Program-made: the position numbers and the translations under genes
Source of the DNA: Schizochytrium sp. TIO01
Taxonomy: Eukaryota; Protista; Bigyra: Labyrinthulomycetes
Length of the DNA stretch: 64,000 nucleotides
Direction: 5' to 3'
NCBI GenBank assembly: GCA_004764695.1
Contig: SMSO01000033.1
Location: 806,001 to 870,000 of the forward strand
The notes under the pieces: generated by a model
What the model was told of the DNA's origin: nothing
Databases searched by the model: none
The model's input: only the letters and a program-made list of their open reading frames with translations
In this document: positions 868 through 62,952 of the stretch, in pieces
Layout of the letters: every line of letters starts with the position of its first letter
Numbering within the stretch: position 1 is the first letter of the stretch

Positions 868-3222
868 TTAAACGCGCTTTTGCGCAGCAGCGGGGCGATG
901 CTGTCTTCGACGTTCTCGCTCACGCTGCGCCTTGGTAGCTTTAAAAAAGGCGACACTATCAGGCTCCTCTGCTTGTACGCGCTCAATTTCAAGCTTATCA
1001 AACTGCTCGCCGTCATCCAAAATATCTTCATCATCAAAAGCAAGCTTTTCCTCGCGCTGACGTTGCGCCTCAAGAAACCAGGATTGAAAACTTTTAAGAA
1101 GGTCCACCTTGATCACATCGCGGTCTTCAGCCAACCCTTCCTTTGTACGGCGCAGCTCATCATATTCATCACGCACAGCTCGGAATTGCTTCTTAAGCTC
1201 CTTTGCTTTCTTCATAAGGATGAATTCCTCTTCATCAATAATGCGCTCTTCATCTGCAGCTAGCTTACCTTCAGCCACCTTTTGCTCCTCACGAATGGTG
1301 TCGATTCTCGCTTGAGTTTGATCCTGCTCCTCTTGAAGAGAGCGCAACAATTGACGTTTTTCTTGCATCTGGGCCATGCATGCCTTTGACTCACGCTGGT
1401 TCTGTTGCAATTTTCCTTGTTTCTCTGTTGCCACGAGATTAGTATACATCTTGAACGCAGCCTCACGGTTTGCAGGTACTTGTGATGGGTCAATTTCGCG
1501 ACGAACAAGATTTTGGTGTTTTGCATCATGCGAAGGCTCCTCAGTGTCCTCCTCATTGGCTCCATTATCTTCCGTATGATGTTTAGATGCACCATCATCA
1601 GATCGTTGATTGAGGACAGCGGCTGTGTCGCCGAGTTTAGATTCTTCATCATGCCCATTTGTATGTTTTGGGCTGCTAGCCCCCCCTGGCAAATCCATAT
1701 CCTTTGGACGAGCCTCTGCAGGGGCTCTACCGAGCGAAAAACCGTGATCACCCTCTTCCTCTCCTACAAAACCATCTTGGTCCTCTCCACTACGTCCAGA
1801 TTGAGACAGGTGAGCGGCACTTGCAGCTTGCGAAAGTTGCCCTTCACGAGACTGAAACTGGAATTGTTGCCGCAGCTTTTCTTCAACCCGTGCTTCTGAG
1901 CTCTGAATTAGTAATTTGAACTGACGGAAGCACTCCTGCACGTGGCGGACACTCTGGATCTCTATTGTATTCTCTTCTTCCTGTTCAGGTGATGCATCCA
2001 CAAATCTACGAACCTGCTGAGCAATAGAACGGCACTCTTCTGGAGTATACTCTTCATAAGACACACCAGATCGCTTGGCAAGGGCGTCATGCATCATCAA
2101 CTCTTGTTTGAGCTCTCTAATCTGTCTTTCGTAGCGACGTAACAGCATCCCGTCATCACTCTGTACGTTTGCTGTAGCTTGATTCTCAACTCTCATCATT
2201 CGTTGAGCCAGTTTGAGCGTAGATGTGGACTCCTCAAGGTGCTTAGCTTCACCCCAAATGCATGCAATAAGGGAGGTATTGCAATTGCCTCCAAGAGAAT
2301 CTTTCAGTACGTTTGTAAGTTTCGTCTGGCGGTAAGGAATGTGCGAGCGGCTTCCTGAGGTAAGGGCTACTACAACTTGCTCGAGGTAGGTGAGAGACTT
2401 ATTGATGTAGCGAGATTCCTTGCGAAGCTGTTCATCCATTTTCTCTCCAATCGCCTTTTTAAGACGCTCTGAACCAGCTAAATCAACAAGGTTGAGCTTG
2501 CTCACAATAACTTCTTCAGCGCGGAGTCGGGACTTTTGTTCCACGTGCAGCGTAAATATAGAGTGAGAACGGTTAGACTGCTTATTAAGCTGATGCTCGG
2601 CAACAATTCGATTTTCCTCGCCACGGAAAAGAGCGCGCAAAGCTTCTTCTTCATTGGCTACTTCCTCAACGGTGAGTCCGCGAACTTGCATCGTGTGCGT
2701 ACGTGCATCTTCGGTTATTTGGAAATCCTTCTCCGCGGTTGCACCAGCATCATCCAGAAGGTCAAAGATTTTTTCGTTATAAATCTCCATGAACGACACC
2801 GAAACTGTAAAATCCTGCTGCGGATGGTTCTCAATCTCTGCAAAGAGGTGAGTCACAGCCCGAGGGATGATACCACGCTGGGCAAAATTTTGCGTATCAC
2901 CAGTCATTGTAAATGTTTTGCCGGCTCCGGTTTGTCCATATGCCATGACCGTACCATTGACTCCTTCGATCACACCATCAACAATATGGTCAGCAGCTTC
3001 GGCGTAAACAGATTCTTGAGCACTATTGTGGAGGACTTTGTCAAATTGGAATCTCCACGTATCACGGCGGTTGTCCATAGCAGAGCGGTCCGCATTATGA
3101 TCTATCTCGCGACGCTTGATGCAGACCGTGTTTTTATCAGCATCGACCTGAATCTGGTCTTGGGAGAAGTTTGCCGTAGGTCTTGTCCGTACGAGCACTT
3201 TGATACACTCTTTCCGAGCCAT
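868..3222 (-). CDS. KIF9: Kinesin-9 family motor (KIF9/KLP1-like)
   Basis: N-terminal motor with P-loop AYGQTGAGKT, switch II LVDLAGSER, HIPYRQTKLT; kinesin-9-type neck LKQELMMHD...SY and C-terminal coiled coil. Confidence 0.9.
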   Translation of the reverse strand: MARKECIKVLVRTRPTANFSQDQIQVDADKNTVCIKRREIDHNADRSAMDNRRDTWRFQFDKVLHNSAQESVYAEAADHIVDGVIEGVNGTVMAYGQTGAGKTFTMTGDTQNFAQRGIIPRAVTHLFAEIENHPQQDFTVSVSFMEIYNEKIFDLLDDAGATAEKDFQITEDARTHTMQVRGLTVEEVANEEEALRALFRGEENRIVAEHQLNKQSNRSHSIFTLHVEQKSRLRAEEVIVSKLNLVDLAGSERLKKAIGEKMDEQLRKESRYINKSLTYLEQVVVALTSGSRSHIPYRQTKLTNVLKDSLGGNCNTSLIACIWGEAKHLEESTSTLKLAQRMMRVENQATANVQSDDGMLLRRYERQIRELKQELMMHDALAKRSGVSYEEYTPEECRSIAQQVRRFVDASPEQEEENTIEIQSVRHVQECFRQFKLLIQSSEARVEEKLRQQFQFQSREGQLSQAASAAHLSQSGRSGEDQDGFVGEEEGDHGFSLGRAPAEARPKDMDLPGGASSPKHTNGHDEESKLGDTAAVLNQRSDDGASKHHTEDNGANEEDTEEPSHDAKHQNLVRREIDPSQVPANREAAFKMYTNLVATEKQGKLQQNQRESKACMAQMQEKRQLLRSLQEEQDQTQARIDTIREEQKVAEGKLAADEERIIDEEEFILMKKAKELKKQFRAVRDEYDELRRTKEGLAEDRDVIKVDLLKSFQSWFLEAQRQREEKLAFDDEDILDDGEQFDKLEIERVQAEEPDSVAFFKATKAQRERERRRQHRPAAAQKRV

Positions 3223-4064
3223 CTTGAAAGATTAGAACGATTATTTCGCAAGCACAGAGTCGCAGCCACCAGTGAGAGTCCTCCACGTTGGGGGGCTTTA
3301 ATTTTGCTCTCTCCCAACTCCTATCTGTTGAAGGACCCCGCTTCTACAAAGCTTTGTAGTCGCGTCTAGTTTTGTTGCTCCTCCAATACTCAGTACGGAG
3401 AATGAAGAACCTGAGTATTGTAAATGTTTCAATACTTCGCTTGTATGAGACCGTGATAACGTTCATTAAAAGTTAGTGGTGCTGATATTTGTCTATTTCT
3501 TCAATCATACCTGTATAGGTAATTAAGAGTTCCGTGCACTTGCCTATCTTAATATTAGTTCATCAAAATATAATATATGCCAATGCTCCTTATGCTTTAT
3601 TAAGATGATTACTTCAAGTAATGCCAGTTTATATTGTAAGTCCAACGGCTCAAAGTGCACACCTATGAAGTTCTATGAAACTAGGTCATGATTGACTTGA
3701 ATAATTTATTTTCTGATATCTGAAGACTGTAAGAGGGGGAACAGGCAGCTTGAAGAGAAGATATACTTTATTAGACTGTGTTAGGCTAGCAAGTGCTCCC
3801 AAAATCCAGCGAATGTATCTTTTCCAATAGCCCTACAGTTCTAAACATTTGGCTAATTGATCTATGTTTATCACCTTCTTGAAGTAATAGTATTAACCAG
3901 ACCGAAGCAAAAGTTGATACGCAAGATCTCTCTATGAGAAATCCAAGCGTGACTCAGAAGGATTAAAACGAGCCTGATACAATTACTATGACGACTAACA
4001 TACCATAGCTTTTCTGGAAATTATGATACTTGTATTATGACTTCTTCTCTGAGTCGGCATCCTC

Positions 4065-39347: not shown

Positions 39348-39844
39348 CACATCATTGCCTTGGACCTGGGAGTTCGCTCATTTCAGATCATGTACGACGC
39401 CATGTGGCTGTTTTGGCTTGTGTTTTCTACCCAAACTGAAGACTCAAACTCAGTACCTTGACTAGTGCGAGTGGTATAACCCTGATGACCGAGCCTTTGC
39501 ATGGAGACAAAAACCAAAGTCTTCTCTGTCGCCGTACCGACACAATTCAAGGTAAACAGGCTCAAAAGAATAAAGACAAAACTGCCTTGAGACGTGCATA
39601 CCTACGCGCACTCCTTAAGATTAAGAACAAAACTCCCGAGATTCACCGCAAGCTTGCTCTTTGGTTCTGTGAAAACTACTGTGTTATCCTGTTGCCTAGA
39701 TTTTGAAGCCTCTCAGATCGTCACCACGTGGACAAGACGGGTCAAAAGCAAGATAACTCCAATAGAGCGTCGTTGAGGGCACACTAGCTTCTGCCAAGCG
39801 CTTATTCCTAAAGCCGAGCTTCCCCCTGGTGTAGACTTGTTATT
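39348..39844 (+). pseudogene. Decayed Fanzor2/TnpB-like nuclease fragment (RuvC-I to just before the Zn finger), IS607-type element relic
   Basis: Across frameshifts: HIIALDLGVRSFQIMYD (39348-39398; cf. IALDPGVRTF..YD), LRRAYLRALLKIKNKTPEIHRKLALWFCENYCVILLPRF/EASQIV, RRVKSKI....*GHTSFCQALIPKAE, PWCRLVI; 52/66 nt identical to 59566-59631 by manual alignment. Confidence 0.85.
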
Positions 39845-48726: not shown

Positions 48727-51700
48727 ATGCAACGCAGTCGTGCTGCAGCCCAAGGTGAGGGCCATAGACCAGGAGGAGCACGGGAATTGCCGCGGGTTGC
48801 CAAGGTGAAGTTTCGTTCTCCTAAGAAAGGCCGTGGAAAGAGGAACAGTTCAGGAAGACCACCAAGTGCAACACAAGTGCAGAGACGGAAACGTCAAAGA
48901 GAAATTAAAGTTATTGATAATGCATTAGTCGACCATGCTCTGCTGAGGGACGGCGAGCACAACTATTTGCATCAAACAAGCAACAACAACAGTCATGAAA
49001 GCGAAGATGTTGGCTATAAAATTGGCAATAAAATCGGTGAATATAATTACACGAGTGAATTTGAACAAAATGACCCAAGCTTTGAATCTGGGCCGGACAC
49101 GGACCGCAAGGTATCAAAGTTGGATAAGGCCGCACGGAGAAGTGGCTTCGTGTCCGCAGCGATGCACTCTCCAACCATGAGAGCATCTCCCCGAAGGCTT
49201 CCAGGCCTTAAGTTTGCGAGACCACCTGGTTGGGATACGCAGAAGCAAGCAAAACACTATGTAACTCTTCGAAACTCAGTACCGAAGGAGGACTTCCCTC
49301 GCCACCTTGCAGACGGTATTCAGCATTTGGAAGACTATGAGCGCGTGCGTAGTCCAACAAGTCCCCCTCTAGACCAAGGGCTCCACCAAAGGCTTCCTTA
49401 CACTAGCACAAAGTCAATTACTCAGCAAGAGGCTATTGCTCAGTACCACGAGCTTTTGCAAAAGGTTCATGCGCTTTCACAGGCAGAGAGGCTTCGAAAA
49501 GAGAGGCAAATGACTCCTGGTAGTCATGGCGATATTCGTGACGATGACGGCTTTGGTGAGGAGGAAGCACTCTTGGGAAGAGGAGAGAGCGCTGGCGCGA
49601 CCTCAAACCGTGCGCCTCATCCATCTGAACTTGAAGACTTGCCGTTCGGTCACTTGGCATTTCATCATTTGAGCTGCGAACCTGCAGAAGAAATTGATTT
49701 GCGTCACTGGCGAGAAGAGATATCTGATGACACACTTTGCAGACTACTTTCGTGTACTTTAGCATGCCGTGTACTTGATATCCGTGGTGCAAAGCTCATT
49801 TCCGATGTTGGATTGATTCGTGCAGTTGGCTTTTGCCCACATTTGGAAATTCTTCGGATCGCTGGTTGTGAACGTCTTACGGATGATGGTATAGAGTCAG
49901 CTCTTAACATCTGCGGACACAATCTTGCCGAGTTGGACTTGGCAAAGTTTGCTTCTCCTCCTTTACAACATGAAGATTCGCTGAGTGGTATGAGCACAGA
50001 ATTATGGTGTAACTGCTGTCAAGGTCCGCGCCTTCGTTGCGCAGACCAACCACGTAATGAACTCTTTCGCTCTGGAGAAAGGTCAACCTCTCTGAAAATT
50101 TCAACTAAAGCTCTTTACTGTCTTGCACAGATATGTATACGTTTAGAGGTCCTTGTGCTAAGAGAACAACATGAAGCTGTAACAAATGACACTATGATAG
50201 CTATAGCTTCAAGCTGTGGTGACTTACGACTTATTGACGTCGGAGAATGTGATCGTTTAGGACAAGAAACAATGAAAGCCCTTGGTCGGAAATGTGGACC
50301 GAAACTCCAAGATGTTCGAGTTTCGAAATGCAAATACATCAACGATCAGGGGCTACGATCTCTTATCGGGAAAGCTTTTCATCTACGTTGTATTGATTTA
50401 TCAGATCTACAAAAAATTTCTGATGATGGTGTGAGGATATTTATGGACTCAAAAACAATGTGGGGCCACATTGAACACCCTGGGTTTCATAATGTTCATG
50501 CTGTCTACTTGCGTAATTGTCACGAGTTAACTGATATATCTTTAGGCTGGATTGCATCAGGTTGTTCCCAACTTGAGACTTTAGACGTTCAGGGTTGCGA
50601 AAATTTAGGGGACTTTGGTCTACGAAGCATAGGAGGACTCAACCATCTGAAAACTCTCAATATGCAAGGTTGTGATGGTATTTCTGACTCGGGGATATTA
50701 CAGCTCAGTTCCAATGCTAAAGTGGAATTTGGACTTGAGGCTCTCCCGGAGCTCCACACAGTCATTCTTTCTAGATGTAGCAGAATATCTGAGAAAGGAC
50801 TTCTTGCTCTAGTTCAAACTCTCAGTGGCTCGTTGAGTCGCCTTGAGGTATGCTACACAGGCCGAATATCGGACGATTTTATCCGTCATCTCGCCCTGCT
50901 ATCGAACAATCGTCTACGATGTCTGCGTTTATCTGGGCATAATAACATTACGGCTGCCGGAATTGGTGCTTTGGGACAAAGATGCAAGTACCTCGGAGAG
51001 CTTGATGTAGACTGCTGTGAAGGGTTCGCAAACGACAGCCTCGTTAGTTTGCAAGTACTCCGGCATGTGCACTCCTTGAATTTATCGTATTGTCCCCAAC
51101 TTCAAGGTGTACTTGCAGTTCCAAACTGGAAACTTCAAGTTTTAAGCTTGCGGGCTTGCACAGCCCTGGATGATGGTGCCTTACTAACCCTTCTAGGTCT
51201 GTGCCAAGAGCTCCGCACCATTGACCTAAGTGAATGCACAAACCTTACATCTCGTGCATTCTCATCCATTTTACGACGCCGAAAGGAAATGCCACCAAAT
51301 CTGGATATGTTAAACGTCAAATCTTGTCCACATGTCTCAGACGCTATTATGAAAGAAATTGCATCTGCCTGGAGAACCTCGGGGCTAGAATGTGAATTTG
51401 TAAATGCGGACAGATTTCGAGGAATTCGCCCCAATCTTGCATATCAGATGGCTCTTCATTCGAAAAATCAAGTTGAAGCCAAACGAAATGCTACTCTTGC
51501 ATCAATCATGATTCAGTGTCGAGTTCGTCAGCGTCAAGCATACCAAAAGTTACTCATCTTGCGCCGAGAGGACTACATGCGCAGGACTACCGCCGCAACC
51601 CAAATTCAGCGCATAGGACGGGGTTTCCTTGCTCGGACTTTTTATTATGAATTGCGCCATGTATTGAATTTTTTGGCATTACGCACACAATATCTGTATC

Positions 51701-54700
51701 GACAATATCGCATTGCAAAAATCACAAAACGAGCACTTGCGATTTGGAAGTCTCGCACGATTTCCCGTGCTTTTTTTGCATGGTATGAGAACGCCCAAGC
51801 ACAAATTGACGAACGGCGAACGGAGGCTATTCGCAAGCTTGTTCAGCAAGCCGCCGATTTCTTTGCAAACACTCTTTTGAAAAATAGTTGGGCTTCCTGG
51901 CAAAACCATGTAGTGCACCGGCGTTGGAAGAAGGTTCAATATCCGAAGGCAGACGCATTTTATACTGAGCGGGCAACCTGTCGATATTTTGACTTATGGA
52001 TAGATAATGCAAGACCTGGAATTCTGCGTCGCAAGAATTTAGTCAAAATCTTCCTTTTGTGCCTTCCTTTAGAAGTGCGAAATGCACAAGTCTCTAGGAG
52101 TAATATTTATGCAGCATCGCGCTTTTATAGGCGCACGCAACGTTCATATGCATTTTCTGCTTGGTTTCAAATTGTTCTGCAGGCAAGAGAAAACATTAAA
52201 CTTGCTGATCAGTTATGCTATAAGCATTTTCTCGCAAAACCACACGGCCCAGCCCATGAAATCTTAACGTACTGGCGTAGATTTACAGTGTACAAAATGG
52301 AGATTAAAGAAAAAGAGCGCGTATTACGTTCTCATATTGTTACAATGAGACAGGCTCGAGTAGTCGCTCATTTAGCATATTTGGCAGGTCGACGAGCGCT
52401 TCATGTGAAACAAACTGCAGTTGCGCGCACGCTTTTCTCAGCACAGGAATCCCGAAAAGCATTTAGACGCTGGATAGAGTATCAACACGAACTTCGCGAA
52501 GCAAAAGCAAAAGCGCAGCGCGCATTAGCGTTCATGCGAAACGCTAGTTTGGTACGATCTTTGCATGCATGGAGGCAGGCGATTGAAATTCGTAAAACCT
52601 ACGACGTTAAAATCGAGCGAAGTATTGCACGCATGCTCCAGCGGTATGTTGCAAAATGCTTTCATACATGGAATTATGTCGTCCGACAACAAAGGGCTTT
52701 CAAAGAACGATCACTCCGACGAATTGCGTCTCGGCGTCTAGCTCATGTCTTAGATTGCTGGAAAGACTTCGTAACTGAACATCGCATTCGCCGGCAGTCG
52801 CAACTGCAGAGTTGGTATCTACTAAATAAAACAGTTGTGAGAATCCAAGCCCGATGGAGAGGTGTTCTTGGACGCGAACAGATTGAAGATATGCGTCTAT
52901 TGAAACAATTTATGGCTATTAAGATACAGCAATTTTGTCGCATCGTACTTGCCAAGAAGAGAGCATTTCGAGCCGAGCGCATGAAAATCTTGCGCCTCTA
53001 TATATCTGAAGAACATGAGCGAGATCTTATGGCTTACGAAGATATGGTAGCACAAGACATGCAAAAGGAGTTTAAAGCTGCTCGGTTGGTACAACAAAAC
53101 TTTCGTGCTCGACATGCACGGGATATGGTATATTTTGCAAAGCGAGAACTTGCACGTCAAAAAGAAATTAAGCGACGCGAACATCAGCATCAACTTTTGC
53201 TGGAGCATGAAGCGAAGATGGAGGAAAGAAGACTTGAGCAGGAGAAAAAAGACCACCTCACAAGCAAAATTCAAGGTGTTGTGCGAGGTATGATTGCTCG
53301 GAAAAGGTACATGGTCGTTTGGGCGCGTGCTTACATGGATCGCCAAGCTACGAAAATCCAAAGTATCAGCCGCTTACGTGCTGCTTTGCATAAACTTGCA
53401 GCAGAAAGGCGATGGAACGCACTAATCAAACAAACAGCCAAGCAACAGCGGACAAATGCCCGTATCTTACGCGCAATGAGGCTGAAGAACCGTTCTCAGC
53501 AGAAAATGGCGATGGTGCCACTTGATATGCTTGGTATCCACCCTGATACGTTTACATTGGACCTGAATCAGCTTCGTAAGGAAGTAATGTATGATTTTCG
53601 GGACTGGACGAGGTTTGCTCGCAGCCAGTTTGACGCTTATCGTAGAGCCGGAATGAACACTAGCCAGCGCCAAGAAATTATTCGAGCGTTCTATGAGCGG
53701 GTGAAAGACGAACAATGGATTACCAAAGGTAACGCTATTAAGATTGTGAGTAAGCAGAGCCCTTATCGAGGTGAGACAGGATATGTACTAAATGTACAAG
53801 AAGTTTCCACTGTTCCTGGCGGTGCTCAAGCCTCTATTCGTCTCGATCGTACTGGCACTATCATTCTTTTGCCTTTGATGACAACTCCAACCGCCTCAGA
53901 GGATAGTGTAAGCAGTATGATTCGCGTGAAGAAGATGGACAAGGATTTCGCCAAGACAAAGTTGACGCCAGAGCTTGTACATAGTAACAGAGAAGCACTT
54001 ATTGAATATGCAGAAGGCTTAAAGGAGGAAACTAAGCAGCGCAGAGCTGCTTTACTTATACAACGGCACTTTCGAGGTAAAAAGTTCCGTAAATATTTCA
54101 AAGAAGCATATGCTAAGCAAGTTGAGATTGACAAGGCCAAACAAGAGAAGCTACTGAAGCTTCTTCGAAAACTTGGTCTTGAAAATGCTCGTACAGGGCG
54201 TTTGTTGGTAGCTTTGGGACTTGTATGGCCACGTTACGTGCCAGAAATGCCAGATAAACCATTTGCAGTTGAGACATGGGCAAAAAAGAGACAAATGTAC
54301 TATGAAATGTGGAATTATCGGCGCTTTCAGGTTCTACTTGCACGTGACGAGCGTAAACTCCGCGTGCGCGACCTCAAAAAGAAGTTCAAGAAAGATGAAG
54401 ATTTTGCTGAAGACTCTGAGGAATTGACAAAACCTACCTTGTTATTGCAGAATGGAGAGAGTCGACCCGGGACTAACATGAGTGTCCGAGAACCAAACAG
54501 CGTTACTCATATTCCCGCAGATGTGATTGATGAAGCAGGGGGCGGAGGAGGTGTTGAGGCAAACAACACCAGCATTGTTGCCTTAGAGGTACCTAGCCTT
54601 CCAGATACTCATGTCTCATTGTTTCGAAGAAGCTTGTTGGACTCGTTACTCGCTGCGGAAGGTCATATGTCCGAGGAACAAGAAGCGGTCATGCCCTGGC

Positions 54701-57700
54701 GTATACGAAACCCATTCAAAGCAGCCTTCTGGCGTGGCGTGTATGCGATGACAGATCTCGCACTAGCGCCTGCAGCAGAAGCCATCCTTATTAAATCTCA
54801 AAAGAAACGCGAGAAAGGAGAAATTCCCCTGGCAATTCTTTTGCAAATTCTTGCCAAAGCAGTAGGCGGTCCTCAATGGCGCCAAAGTCCCATCAAACGA
54901 CTTACTTGGGTGGGTGTGTATAATTTTGACCAATTGCATGAGAGTTGTCATGTCACAATGGGTGGTGCTGCTGTATTTCACGGCACATGGAATACACGAG
55001 GTGTACCGCATGGTCTTGGGTTTTTGGAACTGCCGGAAGGAAGGGGTTTGGAACGAATTCGTGAAAAATATGCTATATATCTTTTGCCGAACAAAGACGA
55101 TGATGAGGAGAGTGAAATGTATCGTAGCTTAATGGCATCTCGAAAACAGCTTCGCCATGACAAGTGGGTTGAAAAGACTCGACGTAAAATTAGAGAGGTG
55201 TCACGCAGTCTGAACGAAATATCCAAAAATACTGATGAAGAAAAGAAAGAAGAATCCGATGACGATGATGGAGAGGAGTACCAAACAGATACTGATGATG
55301 AAATCGTAGCAGACCCTGAATATATTGGACGCAAAGGTATTTCCGGGCGTCTGCAAATGAGAGAAGACATTGTCGCATCTGAGAGCGCACCAAGTACACC
55401 CTCTATGACAATGCGCCAAAACTCAGACGACAGCTTTCGAATTTTTGGGGACGCAACTGGTCCTAACGATTTGCTTTATGTTACCATCGCAGCAAAGGTC
55501 AACAATGGCGAAATTGTTGGCAATGTGAAAATCCATTTTAAGACTGGTGACACTTATGAAGGTGGGTACTTTGGAGAGAAAAAGCACGCTTGGTTGGATG
55601 CTTCACGCGCAAGTGTGGATTTTGTCAAACTTGCTTACGATGACGATGTCGAGGCTTGGATGCCGTCTGAAGAAGAGTTTGATGCTTTGGAGACAGTAAA
55701 TCGCTGGACAACTCAAAGCAACATCGTGTACGAGGGAGAAAGTGTGACACATCACTTTCGTCCGAATCACCTGCAAGGTGTAGTGCGGGTCACCTGGCCA
55801 GAAGATGAGGTATACTTTGGTGAAATGAGGGAAGGAAAGAAATATGGTTTTGGGCGGCTTAGTATGCCAACTGGTGACGAGTACAGAGGGCAATGGAAAG
55901 ATGACCAGCCCCATGGAGTTGGTATATATTTTTGGGAAGAGAATCGAACAGCATATGCTGGAGACTTTCTCAATGGTTTTCGTCAAGGTTTGGGTAAGCA
56001 GACCTTTCCCGATGGATCTCGGTACGAAGGAGAATATAAACAAGATCAACCCACGGGTACAGGAACTATGATGAAGCCTAATGGCGATGTGTACGCCGGA
56101 GAATTCTTGGAAGGTAGCTTCCACGGAAAGGGTCTTATGAACTACGCTGATGGTTCAGAATACGAAGGATCATGGAAGAAAAACCGCCGACACTCAAGCA
56201 TAGGAGAAACCAGTCGATACATCAATACAGAGGGTGACGTCTACCACGTGACGTTTGTAAACGATGAAATGGATGGGCAGGGTACCTTTTTACAGGCTAA
56301 ATTGAATCCATGGAAACTCGTGAAACATGGTGTTTGGAGACATGGGAAGTTATCTCACTGGGTAGGCGTGAGTATCAATATTGAAAGTACCAATGAATTC
56401 TGCTCAAGGTTTGTAATATATGGTGACTATAGTAGCCAATATGCAGCTCTGGTCGCTCAAAATCTTCCTGAGCTACCATCGGGTGTTGATCCAGATGACA
56501 GACGAGTAGAACAACATGTCAATGGAATTTTGCGACGGGCCGGGCCTTTGGCAAGTGCCTCTGTTGTAAGTCGATCTGAGAAAGCACTTGCGGAATTTCA
56601 ACCCAAATATGATGCACTCCTTGAGACAAAGGAAGCAGCAGACGAAAGTCTTGCACGCGCAACAAAGCAATGGACCGCCGATAAAGAAGCCCATGATGAA
56701 CAAGACATGCTTTATGAGAACTTGAGTGCAGAGCTAGAGAATCTTCGCTTAACCTTAAAGGGATTTTGGCGCAGAGGCACAAAGGAACATCGCCTGAAGA
56801 GGTCGTTCAAGCGTGCTTACAAGCGTTTGCGAAGTTTCGACACCTTGGAATGGTTTGCTTGCAAAATGACAACTTTTACACCTCCACTCTGGATCGGCCT
56901 ATGGAGAGCAATTGCAAAGATACACCTCCCAGAACTAGACAAACGAAGCTACCAATCAAACGATATGGAAAGGCTTTGCAACAGTGCAGCGATCAATCGA
57001 GACTATGGCGAACACTCGGCTCTTCTTCGAGACTACAATATAAAGCTTCTTGATGAAATTGCTTTTTACAATGTTTATGAACGCACCAAGCAAAAGCAAA
57101 TGTTGAAGGAGGTTGGCAGTATCGTTCATCAACGTGACTTAAATCCTCGAAACAGTGAGCTAACCCAAATTTGCCCTCTAGCTGGACCCTTAATTTCTTA
57201 TGTGAAAGCGGCATATAATTACACCGTTGCAGCTCGGCCACTAGCGGAAGTGATGGAGAAGGCCTTAATGAAACTGGATGAAGTTGAACACGCAAAGTCG
57301 TTATTACAGACACGAAAAGAACAGCTACACACAAGCGAGACTAAGTTGTATGAGTGCGATCGCGCTGTGCAAATTGCGACCATTGAGCTCGAAAACTCCA
57401 AGGTACGCCTTCATGAGATTCAATTGAATCTTCAGCGTGCTCGTGAATGCCAGGCGGTGGCTCAAGAGGCAGCTGAATCTGAGCGCCTCCTTCATAAATT
57501 TACGCGAGCAGAGGAGCTTGATGATAGCCCTATTGATCCTTGGATGAGCCGAGAGGACGAGGTTATTTTTAATCACTGCCTAGACGCAATTGAGTATATG
57601 ATAGACCTATTGGAAAACGTTGAGCCTGAAGTATGGGATTGTATGTGGACAATGAAAGAGTTGACTGTCGCTCGGTTTCAATATCAAGAAGAATATCAAA

Positions 57701-58911
57701 TGCTAGAGGACGACCCGCATTTCGTGCCACCAGAAGTGCGGGATGCGATGGGCGCTCTCGTGAATTGCGTCGCAGGTTTCGATAAAGACGGCGCAGAAAT
57801 TGAAGTGCAAGACGCTTTGAACGAGATTCTGTACAAGGTTCAAGGTGGACCTGAACCCGAGGTTGTCGAGGTCCTGGATGCTGCGATTACACAGGGAGTG
57901 GAGATTTTTCTCTTCGAGGATCGGGCTGAGAAGAGACAAGCAAAGTTCCAAGGTAAACGTGTGGTGGTGACAATGGCCCCGGAGAGGGAAGGCGCACGAG
58001 TGCCACGAAAGTTTGGAGTTTGTGAAACAACTTACGATTATGATGTACCTATCCAAGCCCCACCAGAACCTGGGACTGGTGTAATATATTGTGAAATGGG
58101 GACTACGCAAGTCTATGGTTTTGAAGACACGTGTCAATTTCTGGCAGAAATTCGCATCGGGGATCTACTGTGTCTTCCCGATCCTAATGATTCTGCTGGC
58201 CTGGTAGAGCGTACGGTCGTGAGTATTTGGTATGACTATCACTTAGAAATTGATTTACCTTTTCCGGATGAGCTGGTCATGGAAGGTTGGACAAAGCAAT
58301 GGGCATTTCGTAAACCAGATGCAGTTCTCGAGTACGTGCCGAAACAATTTGCCACTGTTGAACTTGATGAAGGAGGCACGATTGATGTTGAGATTGAGCA
58401 AGTGGAGCTTGCCGAGGAGGAGATTCAGGCAATGGCAACTACGAGTGGTGAACTGGATTCAGAAACTAGTGATTCTGATGATTATTCTATCTATTCTGGC
58501 GATGAAGATTTTCCATTGGATGAGGACACACTTGGTGATAGCACGGGCAGTGCGAGACCTGGAGGTAGATCTTCAATGTCCGTGGGCACACGGCGAACAC
58601 GAGTTTCGCGTGTCTCTGGCAGATCTCAAGGTCGCCGGGGCCGGCGTAGGTCCTCGTCTGCTGCTTTGCAGATTTGGCAACGCTTTGAGGATGAGCAAGG
58701 AAACTCATATTGGGCCCAGATGAATGCTACAGACCCAGGAATCACAACATCCTGGCAAGAACCTTCGTACGGACCGAACGTGTGGTTTCAGTTTGAGGAT
58801 GAGGGCACCGGGTTTTACTATTTTTTCAAACCAAGCACCGGGGAAACAACATGGATCGAGCCCACCATATCCAACTCGAGCACTACCTCCAGCTCCGCCA
58901 TTAGCAAATAA
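48727..58911 (+). CDS. Giant 3394-aa multidomain protein: Cys-containing LRRs, IQ motifs, Sfi1-like repeats, KOW-like motif, MORN repeats, dynein stalk/MTBD-like hairpin, tandem WW domains
   Basis: Uninterrupted 10.2-kb ORF. LRR-CC (L..L.L.GC..LTD.G) about 49690-51370; IQ (IQRIGRGFLAR, IQARWRGVLGR and others); Trp-ending helical repeats 51730-52800; MORN (Y.G.W....PHG.G) 55725-56350; two WW at 58675-58863. Confidence 0.88.
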   Translation: MQRSRAAAQGEGHRPGGARELPRVAKVKFRSPKKGRGKRNSSGRPPSATQVQRRKRQREIKVIDNALVDHALLRDGEHNYLHQTSNNNSHESEDVGYKIGNKIGEYNYTSEFEQNDPSFESGPDTDRKVSKLDKAARRSGFVSAAMHSPTMRASPRRLPGLKFARPPGWDTQKQAKHYVTLRNSVPKEDFPRHLADGIQHLEDYERVRSPTSPPLDQGLHQRLPYTSTKSITQQEAIAQYHELLQKVHALSQAERLRKERQMTPGSHGDIRDDDGFGEEEALLGRGESAGATSNRAPHPSELEDLPFGHLAFHHLSCEPAEEIDLRHWREEISDDTLCRLLSCTLACRVLDIRGAKLISDVGLIRAVGFCPHLEILRIAGCERLTDDGIESALNICGHNLAELDLAKFASPPLQHEDSLSGMSTELWCNCCQGPRLRCADQPRNELFRSGERSTSLKISTKALYCLAQICIRLEVLVLREQHEAVTNDTMIAIASSCGDLRLIDVGECDRLGQETMKALGRKCGPKLQDVRVSKCKYINDQGLRSLIGKAFHLRCIDLSDLQKISDDGVRIFMDSKTMWGHIEHPGFHNVHAVYLRNCHELTDISLGWIASGCSQLETLDVQGCENLGDFGLRSIGGLNHLKTLNMQGCDGISDSGILQLSSNAKVEFGLEALPELHTVILSRCSRISEKGLLALVQTLSGSLSRLEVCYTGRISDDFIRHLALLSNNRLRCLRLSGHNNITAAGIGALGQRCKYLGELDVDCCEGFANDSLVSLQVLRHVHSLNLSYCPQLQGVLAVPNWKLQVLSLRACTALDDGALLTLLGLCQELRTIDLSECTNLTSRAFSSILRRRKEMPPNLDMLNVKSCPHVSDAIMKEIASAWRTSGLECEFVNADRFRGIRPNLAYQMALHSKNQVEAKRNATLASIMIQCRVRQRQAYQKLLILRREDYMRRTTAATQIQRIGRGFLARTFYYELRHVLNFLALRTQYLYRQYRIAKITKRALAIWKSRTISRAFFAWYENAQAQIDERRTEAIRKLVQQAADFFANTLLKNSWASWQNHVVHRRWKKVQYPKADAFYTERATCRYFDLWIDNARPGILRRKNLVKIFLLCLPLEVRNAQVSRSNIYAASRFYRRTQRSYAFSAWFQIVLQARENIKLADQLCYKHFLAKPHGPAHEILTYWRRFTVYKMEIKEKERVLRSHIVTMRQARVVAHLAYLAGRRALHVKQTAVARTLFSAQESRKAFRRWIEYQHELREAKAKAQRALAFMRNASLVRSLHAWRQAIEIRKTYDVKIERSIARMLQRYVAKCFHTWNYVVRQQRAFKERSLRRIASRRLAHVLDCWKDFVTEHRIRRQSQLQSWYLLNKTVVRIQARWRGVLGREQIEDMRLLKQFMAIKIQQFCRIVLAKKRAFRAERMKILRLYISEEHERDLMAYEDMVAQDMQKEFKAARLVQQNFRARHARDMVYFAKRELARQKEIKRREHQHQLLLEHEAKMEERRLEQEKKDHLTSKIQGVVRGMIARKRYMVVWARAYMDRQATKIQSISRLRAALHKLAAERRWNALIKQTAKQQRTNARILRAMRLKNRSQQKMAMVPLDMLGIHPDTFTLDLNQLRKEVMYDFRDWTRFARSQFDAYRRAGMNTSQRQEIIRAFYERVKDEQWITKGNAIKIVSKQSPYRGETGYVLNVQEVSTVPGGAQASIRLDRTGTIILLPLMTTPTASEDSVSSMIRVKKMDKDFAKTKLTPELVHSNREALIEYAEGLKEETKQRRAALLIQRHFRGKKFRKYFKEAYAKQVEIDKAKQEKLLKLLRKLGLENARTGRLLVALGLVWPRYVPEMPDKPFAVETWAKKRQMYYEMWNYRRFQVLLARDERKLRVRDLKKKFKKDEDFAEDSEELTKPTLLLQNGESRPGTNMSVREPNSVTHIPADVIDEAGGGGGVEANNTSIVALEVPSLPDTHVSLFRRSLLDSLLAAEGHMSEEQEAVMPWRIRNPFKAAFWRGVYAMTDLALAPAAEAILIKSQKKREKGEIPLAILLQILAKAVGGPQWRQSPIKRLTWVGVYNFDQLHESCHVTMGGAAVFHGTWNTRGVPHGLGFLELPEGRGLERIREKYAIYLLPNKDDDEESEMYRSLMASRKQLRHDKWVEKTRRKIREVSRSLNEISKNTDEEKKEESDDDDGEEYQTDTDDEIVADPEYIGRKGISGRLQMREDIVASESAPSTPSMTMRQNSDDSFRIFGDATGPNDLLYVTIAAKVNNGEIVGNVKIHFKTGDTYEGGYFGEKKHAWLDASRASVDFVKLAYDDDVEAWMPSEEEFDALETVNRWTTQSNIVYEGESVTHHFRPNHLQGVVRVTWPEDEVYFGEMREGKKYGFGRLSMPTGDEYRGQWKDDQPHGVGIYFWEENRTAYAGDFLNGFRQGLGKQTFPDGSRYEGEYKQDQPTGTGTMMKPNGDVYAGEFLEGSFHGKGLMNYADGSEYEGSWKKNRRHSSIGETSRYINTEGDVYHVTFVNDEMDGQGTFLQAKLNPWKLVKHGVWRHGKLSHWVGVSINIESTNEFCSRFVIYGDYSSQYAALVAQNLPELPSGVDPDDRRVEQHVNGILRRAGPLASASVVSRSEKALAEFQPKYDALLETKEAADESLARATKQWTADKEAHDEQDMLYENLSAELENLRLTLKGFWRRGTKEHRLKRSFKRAYKRLRSFDTLEWFACKMTTFTPPLWIGLWRAIAKIHLPELDKRSYQSNDMERLCNSAAINRDYGEHSALLRDYNIKLLDEIAFYNVYERTKQKQMLKEVGSIVHQRDLNPRNSELTQICPLAGPLISYVKAAYNYTVAARPLAEVMEKALMKLDEVEHAKSLLQTRKEQLHTSETKLYECDRAVQIATIELENSKVRLHEIQLNLQRARECQAVAQEAAESERLLHKFTRAEELDDSPIDPWMSREDEVIFNHCLDAIEYMIDLLENVEPEVWDCMWTMKELTVARFQYQEEYQMLEDDPHFVPPEVRDAMGALVNCVAGFDKDGAEIEVQDALNEILYKVQGGPEPEVVEVLDAAITQGVEIFLFEDRAEKRQAKFQGKRVVVTMAPEREGARVPRKFGVCETTYDYDVPIQAPPEPGTGVIYCEMGTTQVYGFEDTCQFLAEIRIGDLLCLPDPNDSAGLVERTVVSIWYDYHLEIDLPFPDELVMEGWTKQWAFRKPDAVLEYVPKQFATVELDEGGTIDVEIEQVELAEEEIQAMATTSGELDSETSDSDDYSIYSGDEDFPLDEDTLGDSTGSARPGGRSSMSVGTRRTRVSRVSGRSQGRRGRRRSSSAALQIWQRFEDEQGNSYWAQMNATDPGITTSWQEPSYGPNVWFQFEDEGTGFYYFFKPSTGETTWIEPTISNSSTTSSSAISK

Positions 58912-59221
58912 GCTCACCAGATTTCTGGAACAGCTTCAGTGATGAACTTCTCTAATTTTGTGTCTTTTATTGTAAATAAATTTTGCCTACCTTTAAAAGC
59001 CTGAAGTCCAAATTCTCTGTCTACTTAGACTCACGCATCAATCGAATGCGATTAAACGAATCCGTTTCTACCAGTACCTGGGTACTTGTTTGGCCTTGAG
59101 ATTCTAGTTTAACGGATTGACAGGACTGACAAGTGAGCGAGAATTCCAGATAAATGATATATTCTCATTATTTAGGTCTTTGTGAAGAAGTGGAGATTAG
59201 GTAAGAAACTGGAATGATCAA

Positions 59222-60060
59222 GGGACCACCAAGTTCCAAGTACTACAAGTGAAGCAAATCTTCAATTCAAGTTATCAAAGTACTTCAACCAGAGGTTTGG
59301 GGGCTCAGCAAGTGCCCTTTGGACGCTTTCCCGAATGACAACGTTGGGCGCACCTAAGGCTTCGGAATGTTCCGGCGGCCGCGAGCAGCGCAGAATTGAC
59401 CGTACCATTATCTATGCTGGAGTGTCTTCCGCCAAGCAAAAGGAGAATTTTAAATGATACATTGGTGATCTCCAGCGTACCTATTCAGACGGCTCTGCTG
59501 TCAACAAAGACATTGGCAGCAGGGTCAACTACAGAAGGGCGGGCTTCCGGACCTGCTGGACCACCGGGATTCACCGTAAGCTTTCGCTTCGACCCTGTGG
59601 AAACTACGGTGTTATCCTTTTGCCAAAATCTGAAAACTCAACAAGCTAACTTGATCGTAGATCAAATCCAAGACAGCTCGAATGATGTATCATTCGTTGG
59701 CTTTCGAGAAGCTCTCATTCACAAAGACGAGTTCCCCACCCCCCCTGCCAGTGGTGTAAATTGTTTAGTTGCCGAGAGTATTCTACTTCAAAACCATACA
59801 ATGAATGTGGTACCATCCACGACGAGCTGGGAACATCCAAGATTTCCCAAATGCCCCAAAAAAATGCAAACGCGTAGCCTATAGTGATAGATACATACGC
59901 CTCCAGAGATATCCTTTTTTGCTGCCTATCCAAGGGCATGAATAAAGAGTTGTCAAAGAGTTGTCTTTGAGTCCCGGGTTGGTCTTTACCCGCGATTGGG
60001 TCTTGGCCTCACTTTGTCACCATAGGAAATGCAAGTTTTGCAAATTTTACAGTTTAGTCT
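59222..60060 (+). mobile_element. Internally deleted, decayed IS607-family element: TnpA serine recombinase 5' part joined to Fanzor2 (TnpB-like) 3' part, with candidate ends
   Basis: TnpA: IIYAGVSSAKQKENFK*YI.DLQ..Y......KDIGSRVNYRRAGFRT(LLD) at 59407-59560. Fanzor: IHRKLSLRPCGNYGVILLPKSE/TQQ, IKSKTARMM, FREALIHK, WCKLFSCREYSTSKPYNECGTIHDELGTSKI/KCPK/CK.VAYSD/ASRDIL at 59569-59970. Boundaries approximate. Confidence 0.88.
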
Positions 60061-60753
60061 CTCAGTGTCTACTACTTAATGTTATTAGTACCTACTTAGA
60101 TAATACTGGTAGGCCTACAGTCAAACGTATGCGAGTCTTTCACAGGAACCTCAAGGGGCATTGTATAACTTTTATTTTTTTCCCGTTCCACATAACTTCC
60201 TCTGGTATATAGAGAAAAGGAATTCCAGTCCTTTGTCCTGGGGCTCTATCCATACTTGGCACCTATTTGTGTGGGGGTATACTGGAACTCCTACACGCCA
60301 CTCGCGCGCGGCCGACTCGTAGTATGGACTCCTCCAAAGCGACTCGGAGAAGAGGCTTTGGTCAGCAAGTGAACAGTTGCGGTGCGCGAGCGTGGCGTGA
60401 AAGGTCACCTCCGGCGCGGGAAAAGCTTGCAGGCTGCTCTGGGGGGAGGAAGAACTACCCCCCTTGGCGGAGATCTCTTGTGGTTTGGCCTGGCGGACGC
60501 TCGCTCGTCCTCGGCGCAAGATTGCCAGCTCTAGAGAGCAGCGACAGCAACAACGTTGCGATCGTCTCCGCTGGCCCTTGCTGAGAATTCGATCTCTCTG
60601 AGATCTCTTGGGTCTGATTTCCATTGATCTCTTAAACTTCTTTTGCGACCGAGTTATCGCTGCTGGGATTCGGCTTCGCGTATCAAAAGATTTATAACAA
60701 CGGCGGCTTTAGTGTACTTGATTGGACCCAAAAAGAGATACTAGACTCAAACG

Positions 60754-62952
60754 ATGCCAAGTCCCAACGAAGAGGTACAAGACGTGCAAAACTCAGCTGG
60801 TGAAGGGGTAGGACACGAGAGCGGTGCACATGATCACCATCATGAGCACGATGACATCCAGCGCCACATGGATCACCATCATCAACACGAACATGACCAG
60901 CACAATGGAACCCATGAGCTCATATCTCAAGCGGACCACCATGAAGATGTTACAGAAATAGAGCGTGACGCGTCTACTCGAGCAGGTGGTTATACCACAC
61001 CTGTGCCGGCGCAGCTTACGCAAGGACGAAGTCCTGTTCCTGGAATTGCAGGCTCAGGTGCTTCTGCCACACTTACTGGTCTACACGAAACTGACCCAGG
61101 GATGACTGCTCATAATAATGGTAATGGGGAAACCGATGACTTTGATCTTAGTGCGAGCACACAGGAGCATCAGCAGCAACAACGCCGCCGAGAAAACCAA
61201 GGACGTGGAGGAGACCCGGATCATCATCATGAGCACCAGGACAGTGTCGCTGGCCAGCCGATGGCTGAGGACATTGTTTCTGCAGATGATTCTTCGTCAA
61301 TCCCACCGCTGCCACGAAATACAAGGCCTGGTACTACTCGTTCAAATGGTGAACGTCTATTTGTAAATGGCGAGCCGTTCTCGAAGCGACGCTGCCTCTG
61401 CGAGCGGGTTGATTTGGTGAGCATCAAGGGAGAAACATCATGGTGTCGGTACGCGGAGGAGCTGATGGGTGAAGAAAAGCATGAGTGTTTTGACTGGATG
61501 GTCACCTTGCCACCAAAGGGTAGTCCAGGTGAAATTCGTCATGGTGTGAATATTAGGGAGCGTTGGCTTCAACACCTTGGCTTGACGGAAGCTATGATTG
61601 AGGGTGTGAAGGACCAGCGGATCCGCTGGACTCACTTCCCTGCTAAATGCTGGGATTCTGCAGTCAAGGCTCGCCAGGAGCTTCGACAGCAGGCACAGAA
61701 ACGAATTGAAGATCTCAGAGCAAAGGCAACGTTGGCGCACAACTCTGCTGATGCCCAACCTGATACGGCAGCAGGTCGCGCACAAAGAGCAGCCGCTTAC
61801 GCAGAAGTGAAATTGCTGTTGGCAAAGATTGAGAGTATTCAAGAAGAGGCTGACAAACCCAAAAGAACATTGCGGCGACTCACCTGGTTCGTGGACCGGG
61901 ATATGGACGACTCACCTGAGGATTATATTATGTACCGTCGACGCCGTGATCGTGGCGAGCTCGTCCCTAAGGCTTTAGCTATGCCTAATGTAAAATGGGA
62001 TGATCTCAAGCCCAAGTTGCAGAAAGCTCCAGCCCCGGCATCAGAAGTATTGTCTGATTTATTCACCTGGACCAAAAACCTTGTAGCAGATGCGTTAACG
62101 GATTCAGATGCAACAGAACAGAAGACAAATGGTGAAGATACAGGAGATGGGTCTTCAGGTGAGGCGAAAGAGGAAGATCTTGAGAAAGCACCTGTGATTT
62201 CGTCATTTCAACTTTTTGGTGTTTCAGGTGCAGATTTACAGAAACTAGAGCAAAGTTTAACACCTGAAGAGCGCGCTTCACTTGATGAAAAGGATCGCCT
62301 CGCTTTTGTTGAACATGAGAACGAATTGTTGAGACGAGTACTAATGTCAATGAAGCCAACATTTGAAATGGTCATGCAGAAATTTGCTGACAAGTTGCGT
62401 AGGAACGAGGTATCCTCTGATGTGGGTTCAGGCTCTCGAAAGGGTGGCCAATCTAAAACTTTGGGTGATTCAATAGATCAGGCCGGTGAGGTGCCGTACA
62501 AGCACAGGGGAGGCTCTGAGGATACGCTAACCCGCGAAAATCCAATGAATCCATCTGAGCGACGTCATTCTGCCACTTTGCTTGGAGACGGACCTCCTCA
62601 TCAGGAAACAGGAAATGAAGATTTGGACTCTCGTTCTCTAGATCCGACCCGAGGCGATGAAATGGATGAAGATGTGAATGAGCGTCCGACGAAACGGGCA
62701 CGCCGAGAAGAGGCTGAAGATATTGAAGAAGATGTCAGCAATGTTGATGGGCAACGAGCTGCAGGTAACGATGCTATTAGGGCTGAAGCAGGGTCGGGAA
62801 TGGTTGTGGAGAATGGACAGCATGGTGGAAATGAAATTGGGCAGGTTCATGGACCCGGCAATGACATCGTCAATAGTCAAGTTCAAGACGAAAATATGTC
62901 AAAGCAGGAAGGTGACGATGTTGATGTCCAAGCTGAAGAAACCTTGGAGTAG
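60754..62952 (+). CDS. Uncharacterised His-rich/acidic protein with a central divergent THAP-like module
   Basis: 732-aa ORF with disordered His-rich N-terminus and acidic C-terminus; core RRCLC...C...LP...RERWLQHLG...RIRWTHFP. Confidence 0.7.
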   Translation: MPSPNEEVQDVQNSAGEGVGHESGAHDHHHEHDDIQRHMDHHHQHEHDQHNGTHELISQADHHEDVTEIERDASTRAGGYTTPVPAQLTQGRSPVPGIAGSGASATLTGLHETDPGMTAHNNGNGETDDFDLSASTQEHQQQQRRRENQGRGGDPDHHHEHQDSVAGQPMAEDIVSADDSSSIPPLPRNTRPGTTRSNGERLFVNGEPFSKRRCLCERVDLVSIKGETSWCRYAEELMGEEKHECFDWMVTLPPKGSPGEIRHGVNIRERWLQHLGLTEAMIEGVKDQRIRWTHFPAKCWDSAVKARQELRQQAQKRIEDLRAKATLAHNSADAQPDTAAGRAQRAAAYAEVKLLLAKIESIQEEADKPKRTLRRLTWFVDRDMDDSPEDYIMYRRRRDRGELVPKALAMPNVKWDDLKPKLQKAPAPASEVLSDLFTWTKNLVADALTDSDATEQKTNGEDTGDGSSGEAKEEDLEKAPVISSFQLFGVSGADLQKLEQSLTPEERASLDEKDRLAFVEHENELLRRVLMSMKPTFEMVMQKFADKLRRNEVSSDVGSGSRKGGQSKTLGDSIDQAGEVPYKHRGGSEDTLTRENPMNPSERRHSATLLGDGPPHQETGNEDLDSRSLDPTRGDEMDEDVNERPTKRARREEAEDIEEDVSNVDGQRAAGNDAIRAEAGSGMVVENGQHGGNEIGQVHGPGNDIVNSQVQDENMSKQEGDDVDVQAEETLE

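Follow-up and report, generated by a model that had tools for sequence, protein, structure and literature searches.

What kind of mobile element lies between positions 59222 and 60060 of the 64,000-nucleotide stretch of contig SMSO01000033.1 that was analysed here (hereafter the window), and does any part of it still work? An earlier note, made from the sequence alone, had read this interval as a relic of an IS607-type transposon carrying a Fanzor2 RNA-guided nuclease, in the form of a non-autonomous, internally deleted copy. We estimate a probability of roughly 93% that a non-autonomous IS607-type transposon lies in the window as a dead copy under neutral decay. Homology to an intact element, a deletion common to a family of copies, the decay of the window copy and the presence of intact relatives in the same genome were each observed directly. 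The deletion inferred in the earlier note was confirmed, but it is not private to one copy: the locus is a member of an amplified family with at least 40 copies.

The region was read in all three forward frames and the peptides were located by script; every peptide string quoted in the earlier note was recovered at its place, and the 162-amino acid (aa), mostly out-of-frame open reading frame (ORF) that it mentioned is present in the program-made ORF list. For homology, the TnpA and Fanzor proteins of an intact 2204-bp element of the same genome (L045:2756-4959) were used as tblastn queries against the whole window, with E-values scaled to a 128-Mb search space. TnpA aa 5-128 matched 59221-59544 with 47% identity (E = 2e-21) and Fanzor aa 366-491 matched 59563-59940 with 45% identity (E = 1e-15), similarities that are far beyond chance. 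This bears out the assignment of the 5' half to IS607 TnpA, with the helix-turn-helix (HTH)-like peptide QRFGGSASALW falling in the MerR-like HTH region, and of the 3' half to the C-terminus of a TnpB/Fanzor protein. At the DNA level, window positions 59144-59528 aligned with positions 50-482 of the 2204-bp element and 59559-60056 with positions 1708-2193; the short element corresponds to ~480 bp at the start and ~490 bp at the end of the 2.2-kb element. Kept are the N-terminal 134 aa of TnpA and, of Fanzor2, the C-terminal ~127 aa with the RuvC-II region, the shifted Glu, the zinc finger and RuvC-III, while TnpA aa ~135-232 and Fanzor aa 1-365 (HTH/WED, REC and RuvC-I including the DPG motif) were lost in the deletion, in line with the losses listed in the earlier note. 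The parts of the window copy were located as follows.

59074..60067, plus strand: whole copy, a non-autonomous IS607/Fanzor2 deletion derivative of ~0.99 kb; left edge secure from 59143, probable at 59074
59074..59220, plus strand: left-end non-coding region, presumed TnpA-binding end, corresponding to full-element positions 1-~115 (aligned with short copies and L045)
59221..59556, plus strand: TnpA remnant (IS607-type serine recombinase), aa 5 to ~134 (tblastn against intact TnpA)
59557..59562, no strand: internal deletion junction joining TnpA codon ~134 to Fanzor codon ~366; ~1225 bp of the parent absent
59563..59940, plus strand: Fanzor2 C-terminus remnant, aa 366-491, spread over three frames (tblastn against intact Fanzor)
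59941..60067, plus strand: right end with the 3' non-coding region, what remains of the predicted omegaRNA scaffold (alignment and folds)
59290-59322, plus strand: QRFGGSASALW, in the MerR-like HTH region of the TnpA part
59396-59884, plus strand: the 162-aa out-of-frame ORF
59407-59445, plus strand: IIYAGVSSAKQKE, TnpA part, with the YARVSS catalytic-serine motif mutated to YAGVSS
59509-59547, plus strand: DIGSRVNYRRAGF, TnpA part
59563-59583, plus strand: TGIHRKL, Fanzor part
59611-59628, plus strand: VILLPK, Fanzor part, canonical RuvC-II position without Glu
59661-59687, plus strand: IKSKTARMM, Fanzor part, in another frame
59702-59725, plus strand: FREALIHK, Fanzor part, in a third frame
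59770-59793, plus strand: CREYSTSK, Fanzor part, carrying the shifted Glu
59803-59820, plus strand: ECGTIH, Fanzor part
59849-59888, plus strand: KCPKK and KKCKRVAYSD, Fanzor part, in two frames
59896-59916, plus strand: YASRDIL, Fanzor part

The interval given in the earlier note holds the homology, but the element extends beyond it on both sides, from 59074 (or 59143) to 60067. In blastn comparisons with 19 other copies, homology ran from 59141/59143 to 60062/60069. The other copies reach ~65 bp further left than the secure edge of the window copy, up to a terminal GTACCTATGAAAACG; in the window, GTACCT at 59074 corresponds to this family terminus and is followed by a ~20-bp insertion or divergence. 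The right end, ...CTCAGTG, stops at 60067 (...CTAAGTG in other copies) and gives way to unrelated flank, which puts the element size at ~0.93-0.99 kb.

A DNA search of the window's own assembly (64 Mb, 37 contigs) with 59200-60060 returned 49 matches at 67-75% identity, mostly over the entire query, and placed the ~1-kb repeat at no fewer than 40 genome sites. The window copy and 19 other short copies with their flanks were aligned, and all 20 of 20 were collinear and had one deletion junction in common; the deletion therefore occurred once, and the shortened element then multiplied. The same alignment bears on whether the window merely holds a full-length insertion that degraded privately, or an assembly or contamination artefact. 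Private deletions do occur among other relics of the lineage (L052, L053), without collinear matches elsewhere, yet the 20 short copies share their junction while lying on many contigs with unrelated flanks, and the window copy sits among host genes, on both of its sides, in a 2.9-Mb contig whose neighbouring kinesin gene is 77% identical to that of Hondaea fermentalgiana. We consider a privately degraded insertion or an artefact extremely improbable. The earlier note had itself named a lack of TnpA/Fanzor similarity and contamination as possible faults, and neither is supported, given the tblastn matches, the junction shared across contigs and the host-gene setting.

Overall, the short ~1-kb element is a non-autonomous deletion derivative of an IS607/Fanzor2 element, amplified to at least 40 copies. 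Several of the short copies match the PF07282 and PF00239 models directly. Agreement with the family majority was ~86% and even along the entire length, the ends and the 3' region being no better kept than the rest, and pairwise identities among short copies fell within a narrow band of 72-81%; this pattern fits a single old burst and neutral decay thereafter. Neither terminal inverted repeats nor a target-site duplication were found in the short family, so it is not a miniature inverted-repeat transposable element (MITE) in the strict sense. Its closest full-length relative is L051 (C13:1238000-1242500), a decayed relic with the right end ...AAGTG as in the short family, to which the short copies are 70-74% identical compared to 65-67% for the young elements described below. 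L051 probably stands for the lineage from which the short family arose and by which it was mobilised. The relics L052 (C24:3420500-3425000) and L053 (C36:2016800-2021300) were considered as further amplified deletion families and rejected; no collinear match to their deletions was found elsewhere in the genome, and they are single relics with private internal deletions. Searches with these two relics added dozens of old fragments, which brings the lineage total to well over 100 loci.

The window copy is dead and without function. Compared to the family majority it carries 14.6% substitutions, seven frame-breaking indels and four in-frame stops (59455-59457 in the TnpA part; 59647, 59683 and 59875 in the Fanzor part). 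Lesions of the TnpA remnant comprise, near 59331, a 21-bp deletion with a 1-nt insertion and, near 59551, the loss of 1 nt. In the zinc finger the first Cys is changed to Tyr and a frameshift at ~59859 falls within the second Cys pair, and the RD of RuvC-III is disrupted by a 4-nt insertion at ~59886. The frames also decide whether the host may have retained a domesticated chimeric gene, that is, an in-frame fusion of the TnpA N-terminus to the Fanzor C-terminus. In the window, the TnpA part beginning at 59221 does share a frame with the Fanzor part beginning at 59563, and the earlier note had described a jump from TnpA into Fanzor at about 59560-59566. However, the two remnants lie in different frames in the family majority, the original junction lies at ~59557-59562, and the agreement in the window stems from the later, private 1-nt deletion near 59551, for which reason a fusion designed in frame was rejected. 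With four stops and further frameshifts in the window frame, both catalytic centres incomplete and decay uniform, a gene retained by the host is scarcely credible, and we return to the dead transposon copy.

A whole-genome search for intact copies, the check proposed in the earlier note, recovered young full-length elements. Profile searches with PF07282 (TnpB zinc ribbon) located ~15 places where the zinc ribbon lies within an open frame of 615-682 codons, and PF00239 (Resolvase) gave at least 20 matches on the same strand ~1.5 kb upstream of the zinc-ribbon frames. The repeat unit is 2204 bp, and the young full-length copies, ~15 in all (e.g. C32:2840755-2842958, C33:2521380-2523579 and C36:677064-679266), are 94-99% identical, which bears out the earlier suggestion that a Fanzor2 family is or was active in this lineage. 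In L045, tnpA (2870-3568) is followed on the same strand by the Fanzor frame, which runs to 4850, and the element ends at 4959. Both frames (232-codon tnpA, 646-codon nuclease) were uninterrupted in 8-9 of the 11 young copies with both ends recovered; several young copies have a common single TAA within tnpA (at codon 167 in one such copy) and an open nuclease frame. Nuclease substitutions among 15 copies amounted to 0.31, 0.25 and 0.58 per site at codon positions 1, 2 and 3, and these counts argue for purifying selection on the nuclease. Two MMETSP transcript ORFs (601 aa and 617 aa) are present in the protein database, the 601-aa ORF being 91% identical to the nuclease. The intact full-length elements are probably active today.

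The intact TnpA (232 aa) matched PF00239 at aa 83-216 (5e-20), and its aa 28-66 showed weak MerR/HTH_17 similarity (E ~ 0.003, below the Pfam cut-off). Its best sequence matches in the PDB were IS607-family TnpA catalytic domains (6dgc, 3ilx and 6dgb). The intact nuclease carries PF12323 (HTH_OrfB_IS605), PF01385 (OrfB_IS605) and PF07282 (Cas12f1-like TNB; 2.6e-13). Its best PDB sequence match was mimivirus L79 (9b0l, Fanzor2; 3.7e-19), and no Fanzor1 chain was found at E <= 1 in the same search. Similar to the sequence comparison, a Foldseek search with the AlphaFold model of the nuclease (mean pLDDT 72.5) ranked 9b0l first (1.9e-17), followed by ISDra2 TnpB and Cas12f, with the Fanzor1 protein SpuFz only at rank 33 (3e-6). 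The Fanzor signature has been defined as DPG in RuvC-I together with a Glu six residues before the zinc finger, then RD (PMC10711439). Intact copies satisfy the published regular expression (DPG, shifted Glu, zinc finger and RD), with ALDPGVR in RuvC-I (the part deleted in the window copy), VILLPKF at the canonical RuvC-II site, QESYTSKTC before the zinc finger and ...ADRD in RuvC-III after the C4 zinc ribbon, and the rearranged RuvC site proposed in the earlier note agrees with this definition. These comparisons of sequence and predicted structure support the assignment of the full-length element as an IS607-type transposon carrying a Fanzor2 that is nearer to mimivirus Fanzor2 than to Fanzor1.

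In L045 (2910-3568, contig C32) the nuclease frame continues without a stop through the whole of tnpA: read within tnpA, the +1 frame has no stop and the +2 frame has five. The closest nuclease homologues from other sources (578-692 aa) have the same ~200-aa N-terminal extension. This overlap was surveyed in 51 loci, comprising L045 and 50 metagenome loci (L059-L137) with 28-52% TnpA identity and GC contents of 0.33-0.64. The tnpA +1 frame was free of stops in 35 of these 51 loci, not all of which are independent. On average 0.76 stops were observed in the +1 frame against 3.3 expected by synonymous-codon shuffling, and 11.3 against 13.7 in the +2 frame. Among the genome copies, tnpA substitutions at codon positions 1-3 amounted to 0.25, 0.19 and 0.27, the wobble position being as constrained as the other two; the comparison rates were 0.58 for the nuclease wobble position and 0.42-0.46 for the non-coding ends. 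In an AlphaFold model of the long form, residues 88-190, which are coded wholly within tnpA, were folded (pLDDT up to 85) and match in position the structured N-terminal domain of mimivirus Fanzor2 (PMC11832414). Together, frame statistics and model suggest that tnpA is overprinted, in the +1 frame, with the N-terminal domain of Fanzor2, an arrangement that could be a way for a bacterial two-gene element to express both proteins from compact eukaryotic transcripts. No description of such an overprinted domain was found in a partial search of the literature.

By its position, after the published IS607/Fanzor2 architecture (PMC10711439, PMC11832414), the right-end region of the element is the predicted omegaRNA. 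In an intact copy, the last 220 nt folded better than all of 200 shuffles (z = -3.0), and the last 115 nt gave z = -4.3. Intact copies and the better-preserved short copies have three hairpins in common; in the window the hairpin at ~59973-59998 is partly kept and the UGCAA/UUGCA hairpin at ~60030-60042 is kept. The second hairpin differs between the old and young lineages by paired changes (GGGC/GCCC vs GGAG/CTCC), and the right-terminal AAGTG/AAGAG difference is paired with an upstream CACTT/CTC(C)TT difference, both of these being anecdotal. No Rfam family was detected at E <= 1 for the full element or the window locus, and no group I intron. The mimivirus Fanzor2 omegaRNA scaffold measures ~205 nt (PMC11832414), a length exceeded by the ~490 bp of the parent 3' end that the short element has kept.

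This retention raises the question whether the window copy, or the short family in general, could still serve as a guide-RNA gene whose omegaRNA loads Fanzor2 from intact elements and directs cleavage or homing at the copy's own flank. The three-hairpin fold of the intact elements persists in several short copies, and intact Fanzor2 genes are present in the genome, but conservation is uniform, without any advantage of the 3' region over the dead coding remnants. In the window itself this region is ~33% diverged from the young family, has an 11-nt insertion at ~59942 and a degraded first hairpin, and folds no better than shuffles (z = -1.05 and +0.61). A working guide-RNA gene is thus very unlikely, and the reading as a decaying deletion derivative is preferred.

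The element ends share no inverted 9-mers, and terminal inverted repeats were thus not found; no target duplication was seen in the flanks of 11-20 young copies. At ~10-11 of 14 distinct left junctions of young copies the left flank ends in AG, mostly CAG, and the right ends of young copies read ...GAG in 20/20 and ...AAGAG in 19/20 cases. The sequences suggest AG as the crossover site, with a target-adjacent motif (TAM) that includes AG; the signal is blurred in the old short family. For characterised IS607 elements, a circular intermediate, a dinucleotide crossover and scarless excision have been described (PMC6188088, PMC10711439, bioRxiv 10.1101/2023.11.20.567912). By homology, TnpA of the parent family would excise a double-stranded circle and insert it by a dinucleotide crossover, apparently at AG, which would leave no inverted repeats or target duplications, and Fanzor2-omegaRNA would cut the donor site left empty, whose repair would bring the element back. 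The short family would have arisen when a ~2.2-kb autonomous element (tnpA, then Fanzor2, with the omegaRNA at the right end) long ago lost its central ~1.2 kb, leaving a ~1-kb element in which tnpA was reduced to its 5' part and Fanzor2 to its 3' part while both ends of the transposon and the entire predicted omegaRNA region were kept. Since the short element encodes no working protein, it would have been mobilised in trans by the TnpA of full-length relatives, would have reached at least 40 sites in a single burst and decayed afterwards.

A tentative and, in our view, rather doubtful extension is that the short derivative was a double parasite that borrowed both TnpA and Fanzor2 in trans, within a family in which the Fanzor2 N-terminal domain is overprinted on tnpA. 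The ends recognised by TnpA may have been kept for mobility, and the complete omegaRNA gene and right end for restoration by homing. If true, this would be the first guide-carrying non-autonomous IS607 family described in a eukaryote.

Some points count against the reading of the window copy as a decayed IS607 derivative. None of its seven stop-to-stop pieces gave a relevant Pfam match, even at E <= 10, because the copy is too decayed and fragmented, and the assignment therefore rests on homology to intact copies and not on direct profile matches. Its left boundary is blurred (59074 vs 59143). RNAalifold on 19 right ends, decayed copies among them, gave only two short helices, and no covariation is claimed because MAFFT misaligns the first hairpin between lineages and the decayed copies add noise. 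Finally, the mobilisation of the short family in trans, the AG crossover and the omegaRNA function are steps that we infer.

IS607-type elements with Fanzor2 have been known from protists and giant viruses since 2013 (PMC3627910, PMC3673617), the nuclease activity of Fanzors has been documented (PMC10530073) and the structure of the mimivirus Fanzor2 has been published (PMC11832414). Fanzor2 in IS607 elements is therefore established, and what is new here is the host lineage, the amplified deletion derivative and the putative tnpA/Fanzor overlap. The elements ACa-1/-2 of Acanthamoeba castellanii, ISvMimi_1/2 of mimivirus and ISvNY2A_1 and ISvAR158_1 of chloroviruses have the same order on one strand, tnpA and then Fanzor2 (PMC3627910, PMC3673617). 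They also resemble the full-length element in their size of ~2.2 kb, their HTH_OrfB_IS605 and zinc-ribbon domains, and the absence of inverted repeats and target duplications. The family differs from these known eukaryotic IS607/Fanzor2 elements in its thraustochytrid-like host, in a copy number above the 1-22 IS607-like sequences per genome of the 2013 surveys (PMC3627910, PMC3673617) and in its deletion derivative of at least 40 copies; the window copy itself is only a dead deletion derivative. An amplified deletion derivative of a eukaryotic IS607 element is absent from both 2013 surveys (PMC3627910, PMC3673617). No link between Fanzor or IS607 and thraustochytrids was found in searchable papers and supplements, a text containing both 'Fanzor' and 'Aurantiochytrium' being left unassessed. 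A scan of viral contigs gave no relative, which says little as only two peptide patterns were used.

The host can be judged from the kinesin gene in the window. Its best match is from the thraustochytrid Hondaea fermentalgiana and the next named matches are stramenopiles, so the host is a thraustochytrid-like labyrinthulomycete. Two records labelled Durusdinium trenchii (a dinoflagellate; P0013, P0124) were also among the closest named matches: a 'transposase A625R' with 46% identity to the genome's Fanzor2, and a KIF9-type kinesin with 61% identity, second only to Hondaea. They could reflect labyrinthulomycete-like DNA in that assembly or a real relationship.

In sequence as in structure, the intact nuclease matches the mimivirus ApmFz2 (L79, PDB 9B0L, PMC11832414) best. 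The two proteins share the shifted RuvC-II Glu by the zinc finger and a structured N-terminal extension after a basic stretch resembling a nuclear localisation signal, and in both an omegaRNA is expected at the right end. Unlike ApmFz2, the nuclease described here resides in a nuclear genome and not in a giant virus, has an apparent AG instead of GG/GGG and shares only ~17% identity over the structural alignment. Bacterial IS607 elements with TnpB (ISXfa1, PMC10711439; the C. botulinum IStron, bioRxiv 10.1101/2023.11.20.567912; IS607/IS1535, PMC6188088) provide the best match of the TnpA catalytic domain. The life cycle proposed above is theirs: circle, dinucleotide crossover, scarless excision and donor cleavage by TnpB-omegaRNA. 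In contrast to the bacterial elements, the family has a eukaryotic setting, no group I intron and an apparent AG instead of GG, and its nuclease bears the DPG and shifted-Glu signature that is rare among bacterial TnpBs. MITE-like elements and the PATEs (palindrome-associated transposable elements) of IS200/IS605 are likewise short and internally deleted, keep both ends, encode no functional protein and outnumber their parent. Unlike MITEs, the short element has neither terminal inverted repeats nor target-site duplication, and retains large coding remnants and the whole presumed guide-RNA region.

By itself the window copy is a fossil, of value as a pointer to a long-lived IS607/Fanzor2 lineage with relics of differing ages. 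As a compact genome-editing enzyme, a Fanzor2 with apparent activity in a eukaryotic nucleus deserves attention, and relatives of the host are grown industrially. The family is also informative on the adaptation of a bacterial-type transposon to eukaryotic gene expression, with the tnpA/Fanzor overlap as a testable idea for obtaining two proteins from one compact element. Which parts of the element are enough in cis for its spread can be read from the amplified deletion derivative.

A second Fanzor2 relic, unrelated to the main copy, lies at 39352-39844 of the window on the plus strand. Alignment with the intact element detected no TnpA part and no element ends; the relic corresponds to Fanzor aa 286-447 (element positions 1473-1921), covers the part from RuvC-I (ALDLG region) to the region of RuvC-II, and is interrupted by stops and frameshifts. 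Upstream of the main copy is an uninterrupted 3394-aa ORF (48727-58911, plus strand), whose stop codon lies 163 bp before the copy, and the next ORF downstream (60754-62952) begins ~690 bp past it, so the copy occupies short intergenic or 3'-untranslated region (3'-UTR) space.

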